Assembly (NCBI GenBank): GCA_965112735.1
Contig: OZ218950.1
Span: 4,650,001-4,714,000, forward strand
Source of the DNA: Phaeosaccion multiseriatum
Lineage: Eukaryota; Protista; Ochrophyta, other classes
Length of the DNA: 64,000 nucleotides
Reading direction: 5' to 3'
Below the pieces are notes generated by a model, which was not told where the DNA came from, ran no database searches, and was given only the letters and a program-made list of their open reading frames with translations. Both the position numbers and the translations under genes were made by a program. This document shows, in pieces, positions 54,051-64,000 of this stretch; position 1 is the stretch's first letter, and every line of letters starts with the position of its first letter.

Positions 54051-55873
54051 AAAGAAAAAGAGAGTGAGAGAGAGAGAAGGAGAGAAAAGAGCGCGCAATT
54101 GAAGTTGGCTCCCACAACAGGGGTCAGGAGCAGAGCAGCGAGGCCTAGGCTTCACAGCGCAGCGCCAACACGAAAGGACCCCTCTCAAATTCCACAATAC
54201 TTCCGTCATCCGTCGTGCGCTCTACTGACCAACCTGCGTTTGGAGTGTAGACTGTCACCACGTACCCCCACGTGTACGTGAGTGTAATGACCCTTCCCTC
54301 AGCGTCCCCCTCGGATTGGCCAATGCCAAACTCCACTGCAAATATACGTCGAGTTGAAAGAGTGGGTGGGGGGTGGAGGGGAGGGGAGGGGAGGGGTGAA
54401 GAAAGGGATGAGCTAAGAGAGGGCGGACGTTGCGCGTATCGGGAGGAGGAGAGCTTCAGCAAGCAAGACACATTCTCCTTCTCTCTATGTGTCTCGCTCT
54501 CCATCTTTTTCTCTATTTCTCTCTCTCTCTCCTCGCACCCTCGCACCCTCGCACCCGGGCCTCACCTTACCTTTCAGTGGCGTTGCCACCTCTTCGCACT
54601 CCTCACGAATCAGCATGGCTTTGCGTGTGTGGGTAGCAGACAAACACACAGAGCGGACACAGGCGAAGAGCAGAATCAGGGCGCGACGAAGAGGAGCAAG
54701 GGCAGTGGAGTTTGAAGTCGTCAAGGAAGGCCAAGCTAGGGAGACAAACAAGATGAGGGCAGTGGAATGATCATTCAGCTTACCCCCCCCCTCTTTAACT
54801 TCCCTCCCACGCACCCGTTCCGCTGTACCCCAGTCTGGCAACAGAGCAGCTCCAATGGGCCTTGTATCCCGGCAGGAGCTCCACGATCTGAGCATGTACA
54901 TCGTCAATGTGCTGCTCCTGGTGAGGGAGAGGTAGGAGGGCATGGGAGGGCCGTAGCAGTAGCAGCAGCAGCAGCAAGCATACGTGGAGGAAGAGGTGGA
55001 TGTGAAGGGTGAGCATCAACAGCAAGACCTTCGAAGCATCGGCCATCGGCATCCGTGCTGCCCAGTCTTAAACCCCAATCCTCCCTACAGATGGCTGTAT
55101 CGCCTCCTTCTCCCATAGGTGTCCGGGTGCGCACCCACCTGTATCTTCGTTTCTTGAAAGGTGATGAGATTGGGCTTCTCTTTCTCCACGAGGCCTTTGA
55201 GGGCGGAGACACTCTCAGGCTTCCTCAGGACGGCACGGATGCCGTTCACATTCCACGATAGCAAACGCATTTTCACGCCGTCGTCCACCTCAGCTGCCTG
55301 GCCGCTGCCCGTGCCGCTGCGGCTCCTCTCGGCTCGTCGAGGCGTGCTTGACCTGGGTATTGACGCCCTAGTCGGCGCCACTCGCTCCTTACTTCCAGCT
55401 TCCGCTTTGGGCTGAGCAACCCTTTTCCGCTTCGTAGGAGGAACAGCAGTAGTAGTGGGAGAGGAGCCCGAGAGTCTATCCACAAGCTGCGCTTTATTCC
55501 CTGACACGGGAAGTCCCCGAGCGCGTAGCTTGTCCTTCAAGTCTACCACCCTCAGCGCCAGCAGCGAAGCCTTGCTGCTCCCCCCTTCACCTTCTTCTTG
55601 TGCCCCTGCGCCTCTCCGCCGCCTCCCCTCTGCATTTCCTCCTGCCTCTTCCGCCCATGAGGAAGCTTTCCTGGCCATGACCCGTCTAGAGTTGGCTGCA
55701 TACACAGCTCCTCCCTGTGCAGCCGGAACTGTAAAGGCCTTCGGTCGACCTCGCCCCCGAACGGAATAGAGTGACGTGTGAACGGCGGTGAACGATCTAC
55801 ATGTCCTAAGGGACAGGGAAGCAAGCATGAACCACAGAGATACCGGTCGTAGTAGATGGGGAGGGCGTGTCAT
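52500..55873 (-). CDS. AP endonuclease / exodeoxyribonuclease III with an N-terminal SAP domain (plant ARP-like), probably organelle-targeted
   Basis: SAP domain LRVVDLKDKLRARGLPVSGNKAQLVDRL. Catalytic motifs SWNVNG, QETK, GYSGT, EGRVI, YTPN, GDLN, RIDY and SDHCP. Confidence 0.93.
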
Positions 55874-56344: not shown

Positions 56345-59300
56345 TTACTCGTAAAAGCGTGAGCCGCCGGAGCTGGAGGGCGTCCCCTCTCCTCCCTTCG
56401 CCACGGGGGTGAAGACGGGTACACCCCAGTCCGCCGCGTTGTGGGGAGAAGCCCTGCGTACGTCTTGCCGAGGAGCAGGCCCAGTGAACACAAACTCCCT
56501 GGACCTGTCCCCCCTCCTTTTGTTCATGTTGTTGCTCATGTGGTTGTTGTTGGTCATGAACTCTCTCTGACCGTAGTTGTGGCTGGTGTGGTTGGTGTGG
56601 GCGTTGAGCACATTCGCCTCGTCCATGGACAGAGGCCTTTGATCCCTCTGACTGAAGGTGCTGCTCGTGTCGCTGCGCGCCGAGCTCCCACTGCTGCCAG
56701 TGCCACTGCTCACTGTGAGCGGTGGGCTGTCCATTGGGCTCCTCCTGCTACCACCTCGACCACCATTCTGGAAGTGGCGCCTCTGCTGCAAGGGGGGACG
56801 GCCATGTCCAACAGGGCCACCAGCCTCACCATCTCGGCCTTGACGGTCAGCAGCACCACCTGCAGCGGGCGGCTCGTAGATGAAAGGACTCTCCTCTCGT
56901 GGCCCTCGCAGAGCCTTGATGCGGCTCGGACCGTACCCGCCCAGCCCCAGGCAAGGCACCACCACAAGGAGGAAGAGGGCCGTGAGCAGCACAAAGCCAA
57001 CCAAGATGACCAGCGCAAGCACACCGTCGTTCAGCACCTTGTGGTTGCTGCCGGGCATCACGTCGTCCGCGCCACGACCAACACCCATCACACCCTCCAT
57101 GTTCAATATATCGAACTCCCCCGAGCCCACCGGGTGCCTGAGCAACGTCGACACCTCACCCCAGGAGAGAGTGAGAGCGCGGGATTCCTCGTCGCATGAG
57201 CCGTAGCTCACCACCACGTGGTCCTTTCCAAGCTTGGTCAGACCGGAAGCAAAGATTGGGCACGCCTCCGGGTCGGAGCTGAGCAGCGGAATGGGTCGGC
57301 TGATGGCAAGGGGGTGGAAGGGCTCCTCGGTAGTGAACTGCATAAAGTAGTTGATGTACTCTCCGGTGGCGCTGAGGGTGTGGAAGACCGCCAAGTTGTA
57401 GTCGTCCAAGAACGATCTCTCCACGAGGACGGCATTGGACCCGCCGTGTATCTCGACACCCATGGAGTCCTTGAAGTACAAGAGCGGTGTCACCACTTCC
57501 TCGTAACGCTGCTCCACCGCGTGATTCTCCAGACTCGATCGAACGGGCGTGAAGGGAGAAGCGTGGGTCAAAAAGCCGATGCTGCCTGCCTCATCCTCCG
57601 CCTCCGCGACGGCCTCCTCTTCGCTCGTCTGCACCCCGAAAGCCATCCAATTCTTTTCAAAGATCTGCGGCGTGGTGGCGGCGGGGTCTGGTTGGAGCAT
57701 GTTAGCCACAATCACCTCCTCACCGCCCTCCGTGCCCAGCAAGTCTCCCTCCGTGATGAACATTCCACCAATGGTGTCGCCTGAAGCCGGGCACTTGTCC
57801 TCGTCTTGGTTGGGCAGCGTGGAGAAGAAGGTCATGAGCAGCTTGCCTTGGTGCAGAAGGAGGCGCGGATCCTGAGGTCCGGTCACAACATGCTGCGTGT
57901 AGGTGTTGTTGGCGGCGAAGAAGATGGGCTCGGGAATGCAGGGTGTCCACTTCTCCTCCCCAGCGGAGGGTGCAAAGTTCATCACCGTCATCTCCCCAGT
58001 GGGCTGCAGGGTGGAGGGCTCCACCTCACCAAAGACAATGTCACTGAACCAGGTGGTGGTGAGGAGCCCAGCATCCGTCTCTCCCATGACCACATCAGGC
58101 GTGGTGTCAAACTCCATGCGATGTCTTCGTGCGGCCATGAACATTTTGTCGCCCACCTCGAGCAGAGAGGGGTTGATAAAGTCGTACTCGTCCTGCATCG
58201 TGCTGCTACTGCCAACCCCTAGAGGAACGCTCGTGGAAAGGTCCAGTCGAGTGTCAGTCGCGCCCGAAGGATAAGACACTTCTGCGGCTACGGGAGTGCC
58301 ACTCCTTGCCGAGCCGTTGGGATTGTCCTCGCCCCATTCGCCAGACACAGGGGTGGGCACGATGCCCCATAGGGAGGTGAGGGCCAGACCCAGCACACCG
58401 GCGTAGGTCAGTCGCTTCCAGAACACAGAGTTGTCCTTGGTGGGGAAGAGCAGGCCCGAAACGTTGAACATGACAATGGCGAAGGCGAGCAGGAAGGTCA
58501 TCATGCCCATATCGGCCCAGCCGCTCCAGATGTTGAAGGCGATGAACTGGAAGATGTACACCGAGTACGAGTAGCGCCCCAGCACGCGGAAGGGCCACAG
58601 GTTGAACAGCTTGGCCACGGGGTCGACTCCAAAGGCCAGGCCGATCAGGATGAGGCCCTGCAGAGGGGCGAGGGCTCCGAGTCGGCACGTGAGCTTGTAG
58701 CCTGGGGGCTGGATGGCCTCGACGGTGAAGACGAGCAAGAGCCCGGCGTAGCCAATGCAGGCCCCGAATCTGAACAGAGCAGGGGCCGCTTCGCGGTAGT
58801 TGCTGCGGGTGTTTCGGGGGTACGAAAGAAAGACAAGACAAAAAAAGGCGCAATGAGAACAAAATAATAGTATGTCGGAAGAAGAGAGGCATGTTGTCGG
58901 GCCCTGAGGCAGACGCATCACCACCCTCTCCACTCGCGTCACTCACCGGTAGAGACAGGCCAGGCCGATGCCGTAGATGTACACATGGGCGTAGAAGGCG
59001 GGGAAGAACTTGAGCATCACCACAAACATGTCCTCCCACATCTTGGTGGACCCGTAGGAGTGCACTCGGTACCAGTCCGCAGGCTCTCCCACAATGGGGG
59101 GGATGATAGCAGGGAGCCAGCCCGCGACGGACAGCGCCACCATGAGAGCGACGAGGGCCTTGTTGCTGAGGTTAGACATGAACTTCTCCATGCGGCCGTG
59201 GAAGAACCTGATGAAGCAGGTAGAGGAGAGGAGAGTGTGATGACGAAGTGAGTGAGTTGCGCGAGGGAGAAGAAGGAAACTTGCGAGGGAAGAGACAGCT

Positions 59301-61936
59301 GCACACGAATGATTGCGAAGGCTCAAGGTCAGGGTCAAGGCCAGGAGCACGCTTACTCACCAGAGAGGCACGATGGCGCTGAGGAACCAGCAGTGCGCTT
59401 GCAGAACGTTCTCCGTGATCTTGGGGATCCACGCCTGCGTCAGCGTCACGCTCGCCACGGCCTCCAACCAAGTGATATTCTGCCAGCGGTCATCCCACAC
59501 GGACACGAAGAAGGCGGCGATGAGCCCAAGCAGGTACAGAGGGTAGATACTCTTGACTCGAGCCTGGAGGAAGGTCCACGGGTTGGGGTACACGCCGACC
59601 TGGCCAGACTTGGCCTGCCTCTTGAGCGACGAGTAGGTGAGCACGAAGCCGGAGAGCATCATGAACCAGGGCACCCAGGTGAAGCCCCAGCCGATGATGT
59701 ACCAGCGGGGCGTGGCCTGCGGGGAGGTGCCGAAGTAGTGCCCGCCCACAATGTGCTGCGAGGCCACGAAGCGCGCTCCATCGAAGGCGGTGAGGTAGCC
59801 CCACGCACCCATGCCCATACCAGCAGCCCCTGCAGCGCCGGCAGCGGCGGTGGCAGGAATCGCCTTGGGGAGGGCTGCCAACTTCTCTGCTGTAGGCACG
59901 GAGGACGACGGAGCCATCTGCGCTGCTCCTTCCTCCTCCTTAGTCTCTTCGCGGTGTCCTTCCTCCTCCTTAGTCTCTTCGCGGTGTCCTCCCTCCTCCT
60001 TGGTCTCTTCTGCTGCCTGCCTCCCAGTAGTAGTTGCAGCAGCAGCAGCACTCGCCGCGTTATGCTTCTCCATCTTGCTCCTCAGCTCCTTGGGCACCTC
60101 CATCAACTTGCGCTCCTTCTCCTGGATGGTCGCGGACTTCAGGCCGCCTCCCTTCGACTTGCCAAAGGGCAGCCTCGCCTTGTACTCAGCCGGCATGGAG
60201 GTGACAAAGGTATACACGACCAGCACGAGGGAGAGGCAAGCCGCCAACCACTTGAGCGCTGTGTACTTCCACGGCGTGTACTCCCTGCCGCTGGAGGTGG
60301 GCGAGTCGCCGCCTGCCGACACAAACTGTCCGTCAGCCGTTCGCACCACCGTAGCGGAGGCGAAAGAGGCAACAGGGGCTTGATCCAACACGAGCTGCGA
60401 GAAGTCCATCTCCTCCGGCTCCTCCGGTGCTCCTCCATCCTCCCCCTCGTCTTCGCTCCCAGTCTCCTCTGCTTCATATTGCTCTTCCGTGGGGAAGACT
60501 GTCACCTCACAAGGGCGGTGGTACTGCTCCCACCAGTCGATGCCGGGCCCCTCTTCTTCGGACCACTCGTAGGTTCGGCACCCTTCCGAGCCCGCCCACT
60601 GATTCGTGTCAGGAGAGGTGGGGGGCACGCACAAAGGATGGAAGGGGTCGGGGGGTGGGAGGGGATGGTAAGAGCGTTTCCCGTAAGACAAAACACGAGA
60701 GAATGTGGAAGGAGGAAGCCTCAGACAAGCGGAAATCGAGAGAAGACTGATGTAGAGGGCACTCTACCCTCATTCCTCTCCCTCCCTTCTTCCCCTCCCT
60801 TCTTCCCCTCCCGTCTAAGCACAGACTCACTCACTCACTGACTTCCCCACCCCCTACCACACCATCTCACTCCACTCACAACCTCACTGACGCACCTGCT
60901 CTTCGCACTCGTGGATCTCCACCTTGTCTGCCTCACACACAACGGAGATGAGCCTTTGCACGAGGGCCAGGTTGACGATGCCCACAGGGTGGTTTCCGAC
61001 CTTCTCCTCGGCGTTGGGCTCGTTCATGGTGCCCTCGATGTTGAATAGGATACCATTGTACTCATCCACCAACTGAGAGAGGGAAGGAAGGAGGGAGGGA
61101 GGGAGGGAGGGAGAGGTACGAGAGACAGACACACCAAGACAATAAGGAAGAGAGGGAGGGGGGAGGGAGGGGTACGAGAGAGACACACATCAAGACAACA
61201 AGGCAAGAGACGGGGGGGGGGGGGAGGAGCGTCACACGTCAATTTCAGTTTCGGGTTGTTTACAACTTTTATGATGAGAGCTGTCGAGCTACACTTTCAT
61301 TCCTTTGACCGACCAACCGGCCAACCGACTCACCCACTCCCTCTCTCACTCACCAGCTCAGCAATGGCAGCCGCTCCTGCCGTGAACTCGCCCCAATCAA
61401 CGACAGTCCTTGCAAAGACGGGGGTAATGTTGGGGAAATTGTCTCTCATCTTGTCCGCCATCTTCCTCATTTGCGAGTAGTAAAACTCCAGCCTCGTGTC
61501 CACGTTTGTTCCCCGAAGCGCCCTAATCTCCTCTCCGTCAGGCATGGCATCACAAGCCCATGGCTCGTTGCCGGGGTCGTTGCAAAGATCGTACCACACG
61601 TCCACTTGGAATACAAAGTAGCCCGACATGTCCGTTCGGCCTGCCGCGATCATGTCATCCATCCGGTCGATAAGGTGCTCTACAGAAACCCCGCTGCCCC
61701 AGAGAAACTCCGGAGCTCCGTCGCTGTCCGGGTCCTTGGTGTAAACGTCTATGCACTCGTCGTATTCGAGAGCGCCACCCTTGGTGAGCACATTGTCCTC
61801 TGGGGTGATGGAGATGCCGGCGCAGCGGATGAGCAGCGTATATTGCGCTAGGTTAGGGTTGCTGGGTGGCTGCCCGTCGAAGAGCCAATCATGCACGTCC
61901 AGATCGTTATCGTATTGCTCGTCCAACTGCAGGGAG

Positions 61937-61976
<40 letters not shown>

Positions 61977-62800
61977 CAAGTCGTCAGACACAGTGCGCCG
62001 ACAGTGCGTATACGGGGGAGGGGAAGGGGGGAGGAAGCGAAAAGAGGGAGGGCAGCGTTCCTTTTATGGGCCCTCCTTGCTCCAGGGTGTGCACTTCACT
62101 TACCCAAGGGAAGGCCGTGGCGAACAGGCCACCGACGTGACTCCCTCCCAAGAAGGCAATCACCATATCGGGGTCTTGCTCCTGCATGCACTGGGCCACC
62201 TCGGTCGGCTCGTAGAAGTGAAAGTGGCACGTGTGGGGATCTGGAGGAGCGCGAGGAGCAGGAGGAAACAGAAGGCAGGGGCAGGAAAGAGAGACGACGG
62301 CCGAAGATGAGTCAAGGTTAAAATATTATGTTACGGTGAAGAGAGGGGTGGACGTTAAAACCCCCCCGGTGTCAGCTGCCTACCTTATGGCAAGTTCTCT
62401 CCTATGCACTCCTTTCCAGCCCCCCCCCCCACACCACCCTCGACGTCTCTCACCTTCGAGCTCCAGCGTGTGGCATATCTCCTCTCCGTCTGCCGTTGTA
62501 TCACACCGCCAAGCTCCCTTCTCGGCCGTCGAGCTACATCGCGGAGTGCAAGCCTCGGGACGCCAATTCGGCTCGGGAACGTCGACCACTCCGCCAGTCC
62601 CTGAACGCACGGCACAGAAGAGAAGCGTCGGTGAGAAGAGATGCAAAGGGGGGAGCCAAAGAGAGGAGAACAGACCAGACCTTCCGACCCCAGAAGAAGC
62701 ACTCACCCGCTGCTCCAGGGAGCTGGACCAAGAGCGAGAGAAGCCCCCCCATGGCCACCGCTGCTGCGGCGCCTCCCGGCATAGCCACAGACGAGCGCAT
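56345..62800 (-). CDS. SGNH/PC-esterase-like + acyltransferase-3 + GH130/GT91-like beta-propeller fusion membrane protein (~1694 aa, 8 exons)
   Basis: Exons 62800-62707, 62600-62454, 62240-62104, 61926-61354, 61072-60896, 60598-59361, 59207-58947 and 58802-56345 join in frame through seven GT-AG introns. Domain motifs are listed in the findings. Confidence 0.75.
59931..60010 (-). repeat. 30-bp coding tandem repeat (EETKEEEGHR), about 2.7 copies
   Basis: Seen directly in the linker of the fusion protein. Confidence 0.9.
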
Positions 62801-64000
62801 TCTCAGCCCGGCCCAACTGTCTCCGATATCGACCGATGTGTAAAGGAGGTAGCGCCCTCAAAGCTGCAAGATTCCTCTTCCGATCACCCCCTTTCACCCG
62901 AACGGGAGGTTTGACGGGGATCAAGTGGCTGAATCCGAAGTGGGGTTTGCCTCTCTCCTCTTTCTCGAAGGCAACTGCGATTCTGGTAACCAGGGTTATC
63001 CTGGCCCACCTCAGCACCTGAGCAGCGGCTCCGGCCAGGCCTCCTCAGCCGCGCTGCTCCCAGTAGTGGCAAGCAAGCGTGGGCGCACAGCTCTAGCGGC
63101 TGGCAGGTCAGCTCCAAGGTCCCAGGTCGAGCTCACTCAAACAGGACCAGACTATTTTGTTGACAACACGAAATTCGTTCTGTGTGGAACGAGACCCGTC
63201 CGCGCCCGACACTACTATTCCTACGTTACGCTGTGCACTCTCTTCCTGCTGTGTGCTGCTCTCTCCCTCTGTCCTTCGTCTGCTGTTCCTCCCACTCTCG
63301 GGCAGTCTGGATCCCTCTCTAGCAGGACAGCACAGAGCTCATGTGGGCCCTCTTCTGTGTGATAATATATAAATCAGGCTCCAAAAATGCGGCATGGAAT
63401 TTTTGGGGTCCCAAAAATCTCCGAAGTACGAATTGGATCGCGAAGCCTCACTTGGCGGCAAGCGGGATCCAGGACGTGCGAGAGAGGCGTTTTCGGGAGG
63501 CTCTCACAACTGAGGCTTCGGCAGCAGCAGCCGAGACGCCAGTGTAGAGGAGGTACTAGCACGGTGGGCAAGGCAGTCAAGGCAGTCCACAGTGGGAGGA
63601 GCAGCGGCAGCAGCAGTCGTGCCGAGAATCGAAGAAACGCCAACGGCAGGGCCTCTCAAGAGGTCTGAGGACGACCTAAACCGCCTTGTTTCCCTCGAAA
63701 GGGCCGCTTGTTTTCTGACTTGGGCTGACCTCGAAGAGTCCCAGGTTGGAATATAGGACTAGCCTGACTGAGAACAGGAAGGCAGAATTACGGCAGTGGT
63801 GGGCAATCCAAGCACTTGATACAGACTTGTGTTTGGAAAGGGGGAAGGGTCGAAGTGGCCTGTCTTCGAGCTTGCCGCGGAGACGCCATGAAGACTGCAG
63901 CAGGATTGCCGGGATGGGCAGCAGCAGCGGCGGCGGGAGCATCTGCTTTGCTGATGGCGATGCCCGGGGCTCAAGGTGTGTGTGTGAGAGAGAGAGAGAG

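Follow-up and report, generated by a model that had tools for sequence, protein, structure and literature searches.

Organization of the locus

The window analysed here is a 64,000-nucleotide stretch of DNA from the ochrophyte alga Phaeosaccion multiseriatum (assembly GCA_965112735.1, contig OZ218950.1, positions 4,650,001 to 4,714,000). Towards its end lies a gene of eight exons that is predicted to encode one large membrane protein with three domains, namely a Cys-rich N-terminal domain (N-domain), a multi-pass Acyl_transf_3 (AT3) acyltransferase domain and a C-terminal five-bladed beta-propeller (Table 1). A previous interpretation made from the letters alone, here called the sequence-only reading, had described these domains in this order as SGNH, AT3 and a GH130/GT91-like propeller. 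We consider the overall anatomy, with a predicted signal peptide, the Cys-rich N-domain, an anchor, a charged linker, AT3, the propeller, a second anchor and a tail, to be highly probable.

The gene was examined on the minus strand between window positions 62800 and 56345, where seven long open stretches are found. The junctions were read base by base and the exons were joined by script. The joined coding sequence is 5,085 nt long and has no internal stop codons; the phases are compatible and all seven introns have GT..AG borders. The base reading and the script splice confirmed the eight in-phase exons, their coordinates and the product length given in the sequence-only reading. Every motif it had quoted was found in the translation (CHFHFYEP..EVAQC..IAFLGGSH, GNHP, FDGAR..GGHY, FMMLSGFV, RVKSIYP, HCWFLS, FINPS, GPQDPRL, EKNW, HGGS, IFASGL and VVSYGSCD).

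The spliced model was aligned with P0001, an independently annotated protein of 1,485 amino acids from Chrysoparadoxa australica, which is encoded on another contig with other neighbours. The alignment ran from end to end with 551 identities over 1,415 aligned positions (39% identity), and was free of gaps at the junctions 80/81, 126/127, 317/318, 376/377, 788/789 and 875/876. With the propeller part alone, P0001 was found at an E-value of 2.6e-71 in a library of 1.8 billion proteins, which is far beyond chance. Exon 6 by itself encodes the final conserved Cys pair of the N-domain, the anchor helix, the linker and AT3 helices 1-5, and exon 8 the last AT3 helices, the entire propeller, the last helix and the tail. 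As these two exons each hold parts of two domains, two of the three domain joins are independent of splicing.

Another explanation is that two or three neighbouring genes, for the N-domain, AT3 and the propeller, were joined artificially by chance in-phase splice sites, or that the gene is a pseudogene. Introns 1-5 rest on consensus signals and homology only, and the public runs of the locus are DNA, which leaves room for such an error. However, exons 6 and 8 each encode parts of two domains in one open frame, and the same domain order is found in one open reading frame in P0001 and in dozens of metagenomic proteins, some of them on contigs barely exceeding that frame. Stops and frameshifts were absent and the conserved residues were all intact. 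An artefact or pseudogene is in our judgement very improbable. As read from its sequence, the gene is intact and encodes a single 1,694-residue membrane polypeptide, and the earlier claim of one gene and one polypeptide is borne out by the colinearity with P0001 and by the domain-spanning exons.

Contigs of all four public runs contained joints from 60845 to 61329 or 61331, which skip 483-485 bases and have 5 other letters between. These joints were rejected as splicing, as their ends (CC..GA and CC..CT) match no intron boundary and lie in repeat-rich intron sequence. They appear to reflect low-complexity, CT-rich repeats within the intron, or else a structural allele from which exon 5 would be missing. 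Repeat-skipped zones were also seen in the same runs at 61068-61176 and 61929-61982. In addition, the word depth was two to three times higher at 58379-59954 in all four runs. This zone coincides with the AT3-coding exons 6-8 and introns 6-7, and the contigs over it were fragmented, with single-nucleotide and indel variants. The raised depth points to a further copy, almost identical and limited to the AT3-coding part, which could come from a paralogue, from gene conversion or from a divergent haplotype.

Table 1. Features of the three-domain gene. Positions are those of the window.
Feature	Position	Strand	Residues	Remarks
Whole gene	56345..62800	-	1-1694	ATG at 62800, TAA at 56347-56345; eight exons; product of 1,694 amino acids
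Exon 1	62800-62707	-	1-31	Signal-peptide-like N-terminus, MRSSVAMPGGAAAAVAMGGLLSLLVQLPGAAG
Exon 2	62600-62454	-		
Exon 3	62240-62104	-		
Exon 4	61926-61354	-		
Exon 5	61072-60896	-		
Exon 6	60598-59361	-		
Exon 7	59207-58947	-		
Exon 8	58802-56345	-		
Cys-rich GGS...GH domain	60497..62600	-	about 40-410	Exons 2-6; putative PC-esterase/SGNH-like acyl-transfer domain
Ser114	62142-62140	-	114	Candidate nucleophile, G[GA]S block
His345	60991-60989	-	345	Conserved; invariant across alignment A3
Anchor helix TM0	60203..60259	-	490-508	Kyte-Doolittle 2.05; two Lys/Arg before, five after
Linker rich in Lys and Glu	59807-60202	-	509-640	Three (H)REETKEEEG units
Acyl_transf_3 (TmAT) domain	58355..59800	-	about 643-1025	Exons 6-8; Pfam PF01757; about 11 predicted spanning helices
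GH130/GT108/GT91-like five-bladed beta-propeller	57095..58207	-	1075-1445	From AF2 model, Foldseek and VIA-align
Asp1187	57871-57869	-	1187	In GPQDPR; invariant in 48 of 48
C-terminal anchor helix	56957..57013	-	1473-1491	Kyte-Doolittle 3.29; one Lys before; Arg, Lys, Arg, Arg after
Low-complexity tail	56348..56956	-	1492-1694	Rich in Ser, Gly, Arg and Asn, from the translation

The AT3 membrane domain

The middle domain had been assigned to AT3, and this was upheld by a Pfam match above the gathering score and by the core motifs. The piece encoded by exon 6 matched PF01757 over profile positions 3-132 with an E-value of 3.4e-8 and 33.3 bits (gathering cut-off 31), and the rest of the domain, in exons 7 and 8, is colinear with AT3-annotated relatives. 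The core motifs of TmAT proteins are DxxR and a His in transmembrane helix (TMH) 1, FxxxxG in TMH2 and an Arg in TMH3 (PMC12423673). The corresponding residues are present here as D649-G-A-R652, H658 and H663 in TMH1, F688-MMLS-G693 in TMH2 and R723 in TMH3. When the model was aligned with 28 relatives (29 sequences), R652, H658/H663, F688xxxxG693 and R723 were each conserved in at least 85%. D649 is present in this protein and absent from the list of columns conserved at that level.

Hydropathy averaged over the family gave 12 peaks in the AT3 region, of which one, between TMH3 and the next peak, was weak. OafB has 13 helices, 11 of them membrane-spanning, with a short helix in the loop between TMH3 and TMH4 (PMC9833829). 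Eleven spans would therefore be the natural reading of the 12 peaks. The profile is compatible with an arrangement in which a ten-helix core would be followed by an eleventh span for the fused C-terminal outer domain.

The C-terminal propeller

The propeller was compared across 48 sequences of the family (alignment A2). The conserved blocks are INPS, AAR.H, W.S, N.T, GPEDP[KR], EKNW..F, HG[SG], H, Y, FASGL and YG..D..SR. Seven residues were invariant (D1187, N1260, H1350, Y1358, S1395, Y1409 and R1417), R1101 and K1259 were invariant or nearly so, and E1258-K1259-N1260-W1261 was conserved in the family. The residue before D1187 was Glu in 45 of the 48 sequences and Gln in the other three, including the window copy.

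An AF2 model made with A2 had a predicted local distance difference test (pLDDT) value of 86.7 and a predicted template modelling (TM) score of 0.87; from the single propeller sequence the pLDDT was only 32. Foldseek placed GH130 beta-mannoside phosphorylases/synthases at the top (E 1e-8), followed by Leishmania GT108 and GH43. With VIA-align, the Z-scores were 20-23 for GH130 (23.1 to 5ay9 and 22.4 to 9gph), with a root-mean-square deviation of 3.0-3.7 Å over 265-288 residues, 17.4-18.2 for GT108 and about 17 for GH43. The structural neighbours in the ESM Atlas were a GH130 cluster, propellers of giant viruses and a eukaryotic cluster carrying Pfam BMT (GT91), in which 16% of the members carry BMT (TM 0.67).

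Among the relatives, P0122 had the best match to Pfam GH130 (PF04041), with an E-value of 1.4e-4 and 21.4 bits (cut-off 26). The match covers residues 102-327 and profile positions 97-314 of 320; it is colinear, has the EDPR motif at its start and continues through to the C-terminus. Two of the 48 relatives matched Pfam BMT over the EDPR and EKNW regions, with E-values of 0.21-0.27 and about 10 bits (cut-off 28.3). A search of homologous-protein libraries, which do not contain the window's own protein, found only two further relatives of the propeller. The C-terminal five-bladed propeller of GH130/GT91 type that was proposed from the sequence is borne out by the AF2 fold, Foldseek, VIA-align and the Atlas, with weak Glyco_hydro_130 or BMT matches in a few relatives. 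As modelled, the domain is GH130/GT91-like as a fold and as a remote relative, but it stands outside both Pfam families.

In the beta-1,4 enzyme Uhgb_MP, Tyr103 presumably occupies the position directly before the catalytic Asp. The beta-1,2-specific GH130 enzymes have Glu where Uhgb_MP has this Tyr (PMC12814180). The E-D pair of the family, which is Q-D in the window copy, may be a hint of linkage specificity.

The Atlas neighbours in giant viruses (Nucleocytoviricota) were propellers fused to GT2 glycosyltransferase and TPR domains (TM 0.65-0.66; model mfb95ca23f13c). A 2026 preprint describes unannotated GH130-like propellers in giant viruses.

The N-terminal domain

The regions preceding AT3 in 38 long relatives were aligned with MAFFT (alignments A1 and A3). 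A shared N-domain of 330-420 amino acids was found in about 26-29 of the 38, with blocks in the order C.[YF]..F..E...C..G.W....G[GA]S, D.V, R.T, G.WY..C, P.E....GH.S and a Cys-rich end. The WY..C block of the family is VWYDLC in the window protein. Among sequences with only 13-20% identity, the Ser of G[GA]S was found in 26 of 28, and the His was invariant. The block order (C..C, W....GGS, R.T, G.WY, GH.S) may parallel the C..C..FVGDS, N.GHWW and DGHPS/DxxH blocks of PC-esterases, as in the TBL, CASD1 and NXPE families. In the ESM Atlas, the language-model neighbours of the N-domains of P0001 and of P0062, a Cymbomonas protein, were PC-Esterase and NXPE4_C clusters (0.89-0.91). The two proteins are only 17-20% identical, yet they retrieved the same clusters. 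The Atlas feature search with the N-domain also listed a CASD1-like cluster, with a score of 0.83 that falls short of a lead.

Pfam PC-Esterase and Lipase_GDSL were matched neither by the exon pieces of the window nor by the N-terminal regions of the 38 relatives, and the window protein had no NCBIfam match. The N-domain had no sequence match in the PDB, and the family profile retrieved no SGNH structure there. When an iterative hidden Markov model search was seeded with the N-domains of the model and of P0001, nothing but these two was retrieved, and the homology of the other N-domains was visible only in the MAFFT alignments. The homologous-protein search returned nothing but P0001 for the N-domain, and nothing of 203-646 amino acids for profile A3.

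The N-domain could also be a luminal Cys-rich domain of another kind, with a role in binding or regulation, and AT3 would then acylate the acceptor directly. AT3-only acetyltransferases such as Oac, WbaK and Lag1 exist (PMC9558356). Neither Pfam nor the PDB nor a profile search gave a match for the N-domain, the Asp residues of GDS and DxxH are missing, and the Atlas scores (0.89-0.92, for 157-167 shared features) are in a range that can be reached by chance or by very distant relatives. Against this stand the Ser and His kept at such low identity, the apparent parallel of the blocks, and the two divergent members that retrieved the same PC-Esterase/NXPE4_C clusters. Ser-His dyads and altered blocks are also known within the SGNH superfamily (PMC9487903). 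We find an unrelated binding or regulatory domain unlikely. An SGNH/PC-esterase type is likely for the N-domain, on the basis of motif order and language-model neighbours, which are leads rather than proof. In this respect the sequence-only reading was supported in part: the motif order and the neighbours agree with its SGNH/PC-esterase assignment, but no Pfam or PDB profile match was obtained, GGS is found and not GDS, and the DxxH Asp is absent.

Among the relatives P0011 and P0160, the region before AT3 in P0011 has neither the GGS nor the GH residues in the corresponding columns of the alignment. A 284-residue member of the 90% cluster of P0011 is labelled poly(3-hydroxybutyrate) depolymerase by IMG. 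Some family members may carry a different type of esterase at the N-terminus.

Anchors and membrane topology

The start of the protein, encoded by exon 1, is signal-peptide-like by inspection of the translation, with a hydrophobic core at residues 7-27. By the positive-inside rule, the two Lys/Arg residues before TM0 and the five after it indicate that the linker should be cytosolic. The propeller contains the sequon N1174-N-T, and N-x-[ST] was kept in 43 of the 48 sequences. The charges at the anchor helices, this sequon, the Cys-rich N-domain and the signal-like start together argue that both soluble domains lie outside the cytosol and the linker and the tail inside. Some relatives have PAN, WSC, ILEI or EGF modules ahead of the N-domain, which fits an extracellular or luminal location. 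Both soluble domains thus probably face the lumen or the cell exterior, with a cytosolic linker and tail; the luminal placement suggested in the sequence-only reading is made probable by the helix-flanking charges and the conserved sequon. A luminal N-domain and propeller require an odd number of spans in the AT3 region, and this is the arrangement of OafB.

In this kind of alga, a Phe after the cleavage site is typical of plastid targeting. Such a Phe is absent after the predicted signal-peptide cleavage site, and plastid targeting was rejected as unlikely.

The three tandem (H)REETKEEEG units of the linker are found at window positions of about 59930-60005 (residues 575-600), and the stretch rich in Lys and Glu is absent from P0001. 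The tail is not conserved in P0001 either, and many relatives stop right after the propeller, without a tail.

Distribution of the family and neighbouring genes

A HMMER search with the propeller gave 171 cluster representatives at E <=0.001. With phmmer and the whole model, AT3 was found directly before the propeller in 62 of 149 representatives, and in 47 of the 50 that are at least 900 amino acids long. On these comparisons, AT3 and the propeller are the core of the family and their fusion is the rule. The named members come from Chrysoparadoxa (a stramenopile), Guillardia theta (a cryptophyte, XP_005834830.1) and Cymbomonas (a green alga). Other members are encoded on metagenomic or transcript-like contigs, some of which barely exceed the open reading frame (1,348 amino acids on 4,091 nt, and 1,268 amino acids on 3,982 nt). 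Judged by these homologues, the three-domain architecture is that of a widespread, uncharacterised family of algae and protists.

In the literature on AT3 joined to GH130, GT108, GT91 or BMT, no paper describing such a fusion was found. As fusion partners of AT3, PMC12423673 and PMC9833829 name SGNH, racemases of alanine or serine, and NRF. The architecture had been put forward as possibly new to the literature; this agrees with the absence of a describing paper, but other genes carry the architecture too.

A paralogue lies head to head with the gene and starts at 63888 on the plus strand (window 63888-64000) with MKTAAGLPGWAAAAAAGASALLMAMPGAQG followed by GT; its signal peptide is much like that of the present gene. 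The two share an upstream region of 1,087 bp (intergenic, 62801-63887). On the downstream side, an open frame at 55085-55873 on the minus strand contains a SAP-like motif (LKDKLRARGLPVSGNKAQLVDRL) together with the first part of an exonuclease-III/AP-endonuclease-like domain (LLSWNVNGIRA), and is unrelated to the three-domain gene.

Comparison with known systems

In the sialate and capsule O-acetyltransferases CASD1 and Cryptococcus Cas1p the domains come in the same order: an SGNH-type (PC-esterase) domain lies in the lumen at the N-terminus, ahead of a multi-pass domain of the TmAT superfamily that has been proposed to deliver acetyl from cytosolic acetyl-CoA (PMC12423673). Their membrane domain is Cas1_AcylT (PF07779), whereas the present one is Acyl_transf_3 (PF01757) and left Cas1_AcylT unmatched, so that only the domain order is common. 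The present protein further differs in that its N-domain has GGS instead of GDS and fails the Pfam model of PC-Esterase, in the extra anchor helix and cytosolic linker between the domains, and in the GH130-like propeller added C-terminally.

The bacterial AT3-SGNH O-acetyltransferases (OafA, OafB, OatA and PglI) share the DxxR/His of TMH1 and the FxxxxG of TMH2. In these proteins, an eleventh helix places the C-terminal soluble domain on the outer face of the membrane (PMC9833829). This outer domain is SGNH in the bacterial enzymes and a five-bladed propeller here, and the esterase-like domain is here N-terminal and separately anchored. The present gene is also eukaryotic and intron-containing, with a signal-peptide-like start. 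The order of SGNH and AT3 had been called reversed. It is indeed opposite to that of bacterial OafA/OatA, with the propeller in the position of their SGNH domain, but it is precedented by CASD1/Cas1p (PMC12423673).

The GH130 beta-mannoside phosphorylases/hydrolases and Leishmania GT108 also have a five-bladed propeller and an acidic residue in an E-D-P-R/K motif. They are 10-16% identical to the propeller described here, and are soluble and cytosolic, whereas the present one is membrane-tethered, probably luminal and fused to an acyltransferase. The GT91 enzymes (Pfam BMT) are, in turn, enzymes of the secretory pathway; weak BMT matches were found in two relatives and a BMT-bearing cluster was among the Atlas neighbours, but these matches lie far below the Pfam cut-off. 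We know of no AT3 fusion of GT91. The fold of GT91 was unsolved as of a 2021 survey (PMC8476585).

Discussion

The protein would be a multi-pass enzyme of the secretory pathway, in the Golgi or at the cell surface. In the mechanism that we propose, the AT3 pore would present, at the luminal face, the acyl group carried by an acyl-CoA in the cytosol (most likely acetyl-CoA), as in OafB and as proposed for CASD1 (PMC9833829, PMC12423673). The N-domain (Ser114, His345) would take the acyl group as an acyl-enzyme and then place it on a hydroxyl of the glycan. The propeller, whose invariant Asp1187 lies in an E/Q-D-P-K/R motif as does the acid of GH130/GT108, would bind and probably make or remodel the acceptor glycan, which would be beta-linked and possibly of the beta-mannoside type. 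Argued from analogy with known systems, this coupled glycan-acylation mechanism may be right or wrong with about the same likelihood, while for anatomy and mechanism taken together we lean, with modest confidence, towards acceptance.

Several observations weigh against the proposed anatomy and mechanism. The locus had no transcript support, as all four public runs consist of DNA contigs from a single sample, in which the introns are retained and spliced joints are absent. The N-domain is without a Pfam or PDB sequence match; in it Gly replaces the Asp of the PC-esterase GDS and no Asp is found three residues before the His, so that both Asp residues are missing. The window propeller matched neither Pfam GH130 (PF04041) nor BMT (PF12141), and no PDB sequence was matched by the propeller or by the family profile. 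The window copy belongs to the three of 48 sequences with Gln ahead of the Asp, where the family has Glu. Moreover, a shared fold by itself shows no function.

The activity of the propeller can be approached through its conserved residues. The invariant acid and the several invariant basic residues favour a phosphate-bearing donor (a nucleoside diphosphate (NDP)-sugar or a sugar-1-phosphate) over hydrolysis or mere binding, and the secretory lumen favours an NDP-sugar. Tentatively, the propeller could represent a new family of eukaryotic glycosyltransferases, luminal, inverting, dependent on an NDP-sugar and akin to GH130, GT108 and GT91, in which case the protein by itself would elongate a beta-linked (beta-mannan-like) surface or scale glycan of the alga and O-acetylate it at the same time. 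This is a specific proposal that we hold with low confidence.

With the same anatomy, the propeller might be no synthase: it might trim a beta-linked glycan in the lumen or outside the cell, as a glycoside hydrolase or phosphorylase, or hold the acceptor like a lectin without any catalysis of its own. Its closest solved structures are GH130 phosphorylases and hydrolases, exported beta-1,2-mannosidases belong to GH130 (PMC4599007), and the C-terminal outer domain of the bacterial AT3 fusions handles the acceptor (PMC9833829). On the other hand, the invariant Asp together with the invariant or near-invariant R1101, K1259, N1260, H1350, Y1358 and R1417 argues for catalysis on a phosphate-bearing donor and not for simple binding. 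Phosphorolysis by free phosphate would be an odd fit for the secretory lumen. GDP-mannose is used by GT108 and some GH130 enzymes (PMC12814180), and BMT-bearing clusters are structural neighbours of the propeller. A trimming or acceptor-holding propeller is in our view a doubtful possibility, to which we give the same low confidence as to the NDP-sugar-dependent transferase.

Eukaryotic AT3 proteins are almost unstudied. Reviews list among them only the NRF-AT3 proteins of worm and fly, with unknown substrates (PMC9558356), and for CASD1 the way in which acetyl reaches glycans in the lumen remains a matter of debate (PMC12423673). A widespread algal family whose single chain joins a TmAT channel to an esterase-like transfer domain and a GH130-like sugar enzyme would offer a natural test of the model of acyl hand-over across the membrane. 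The family also points to a possible new family of glycosyltransferases or glycosidases for the cell-surface polysaccharides of algae, which are a large marine carbon pool. If the propeller is a synthase, glycan synthesis and O-acylation would be coupled within a single chain, for the first time in any known enzyme, with acetyl passed straight across the membrane from cytosolic acetyl-CoA.

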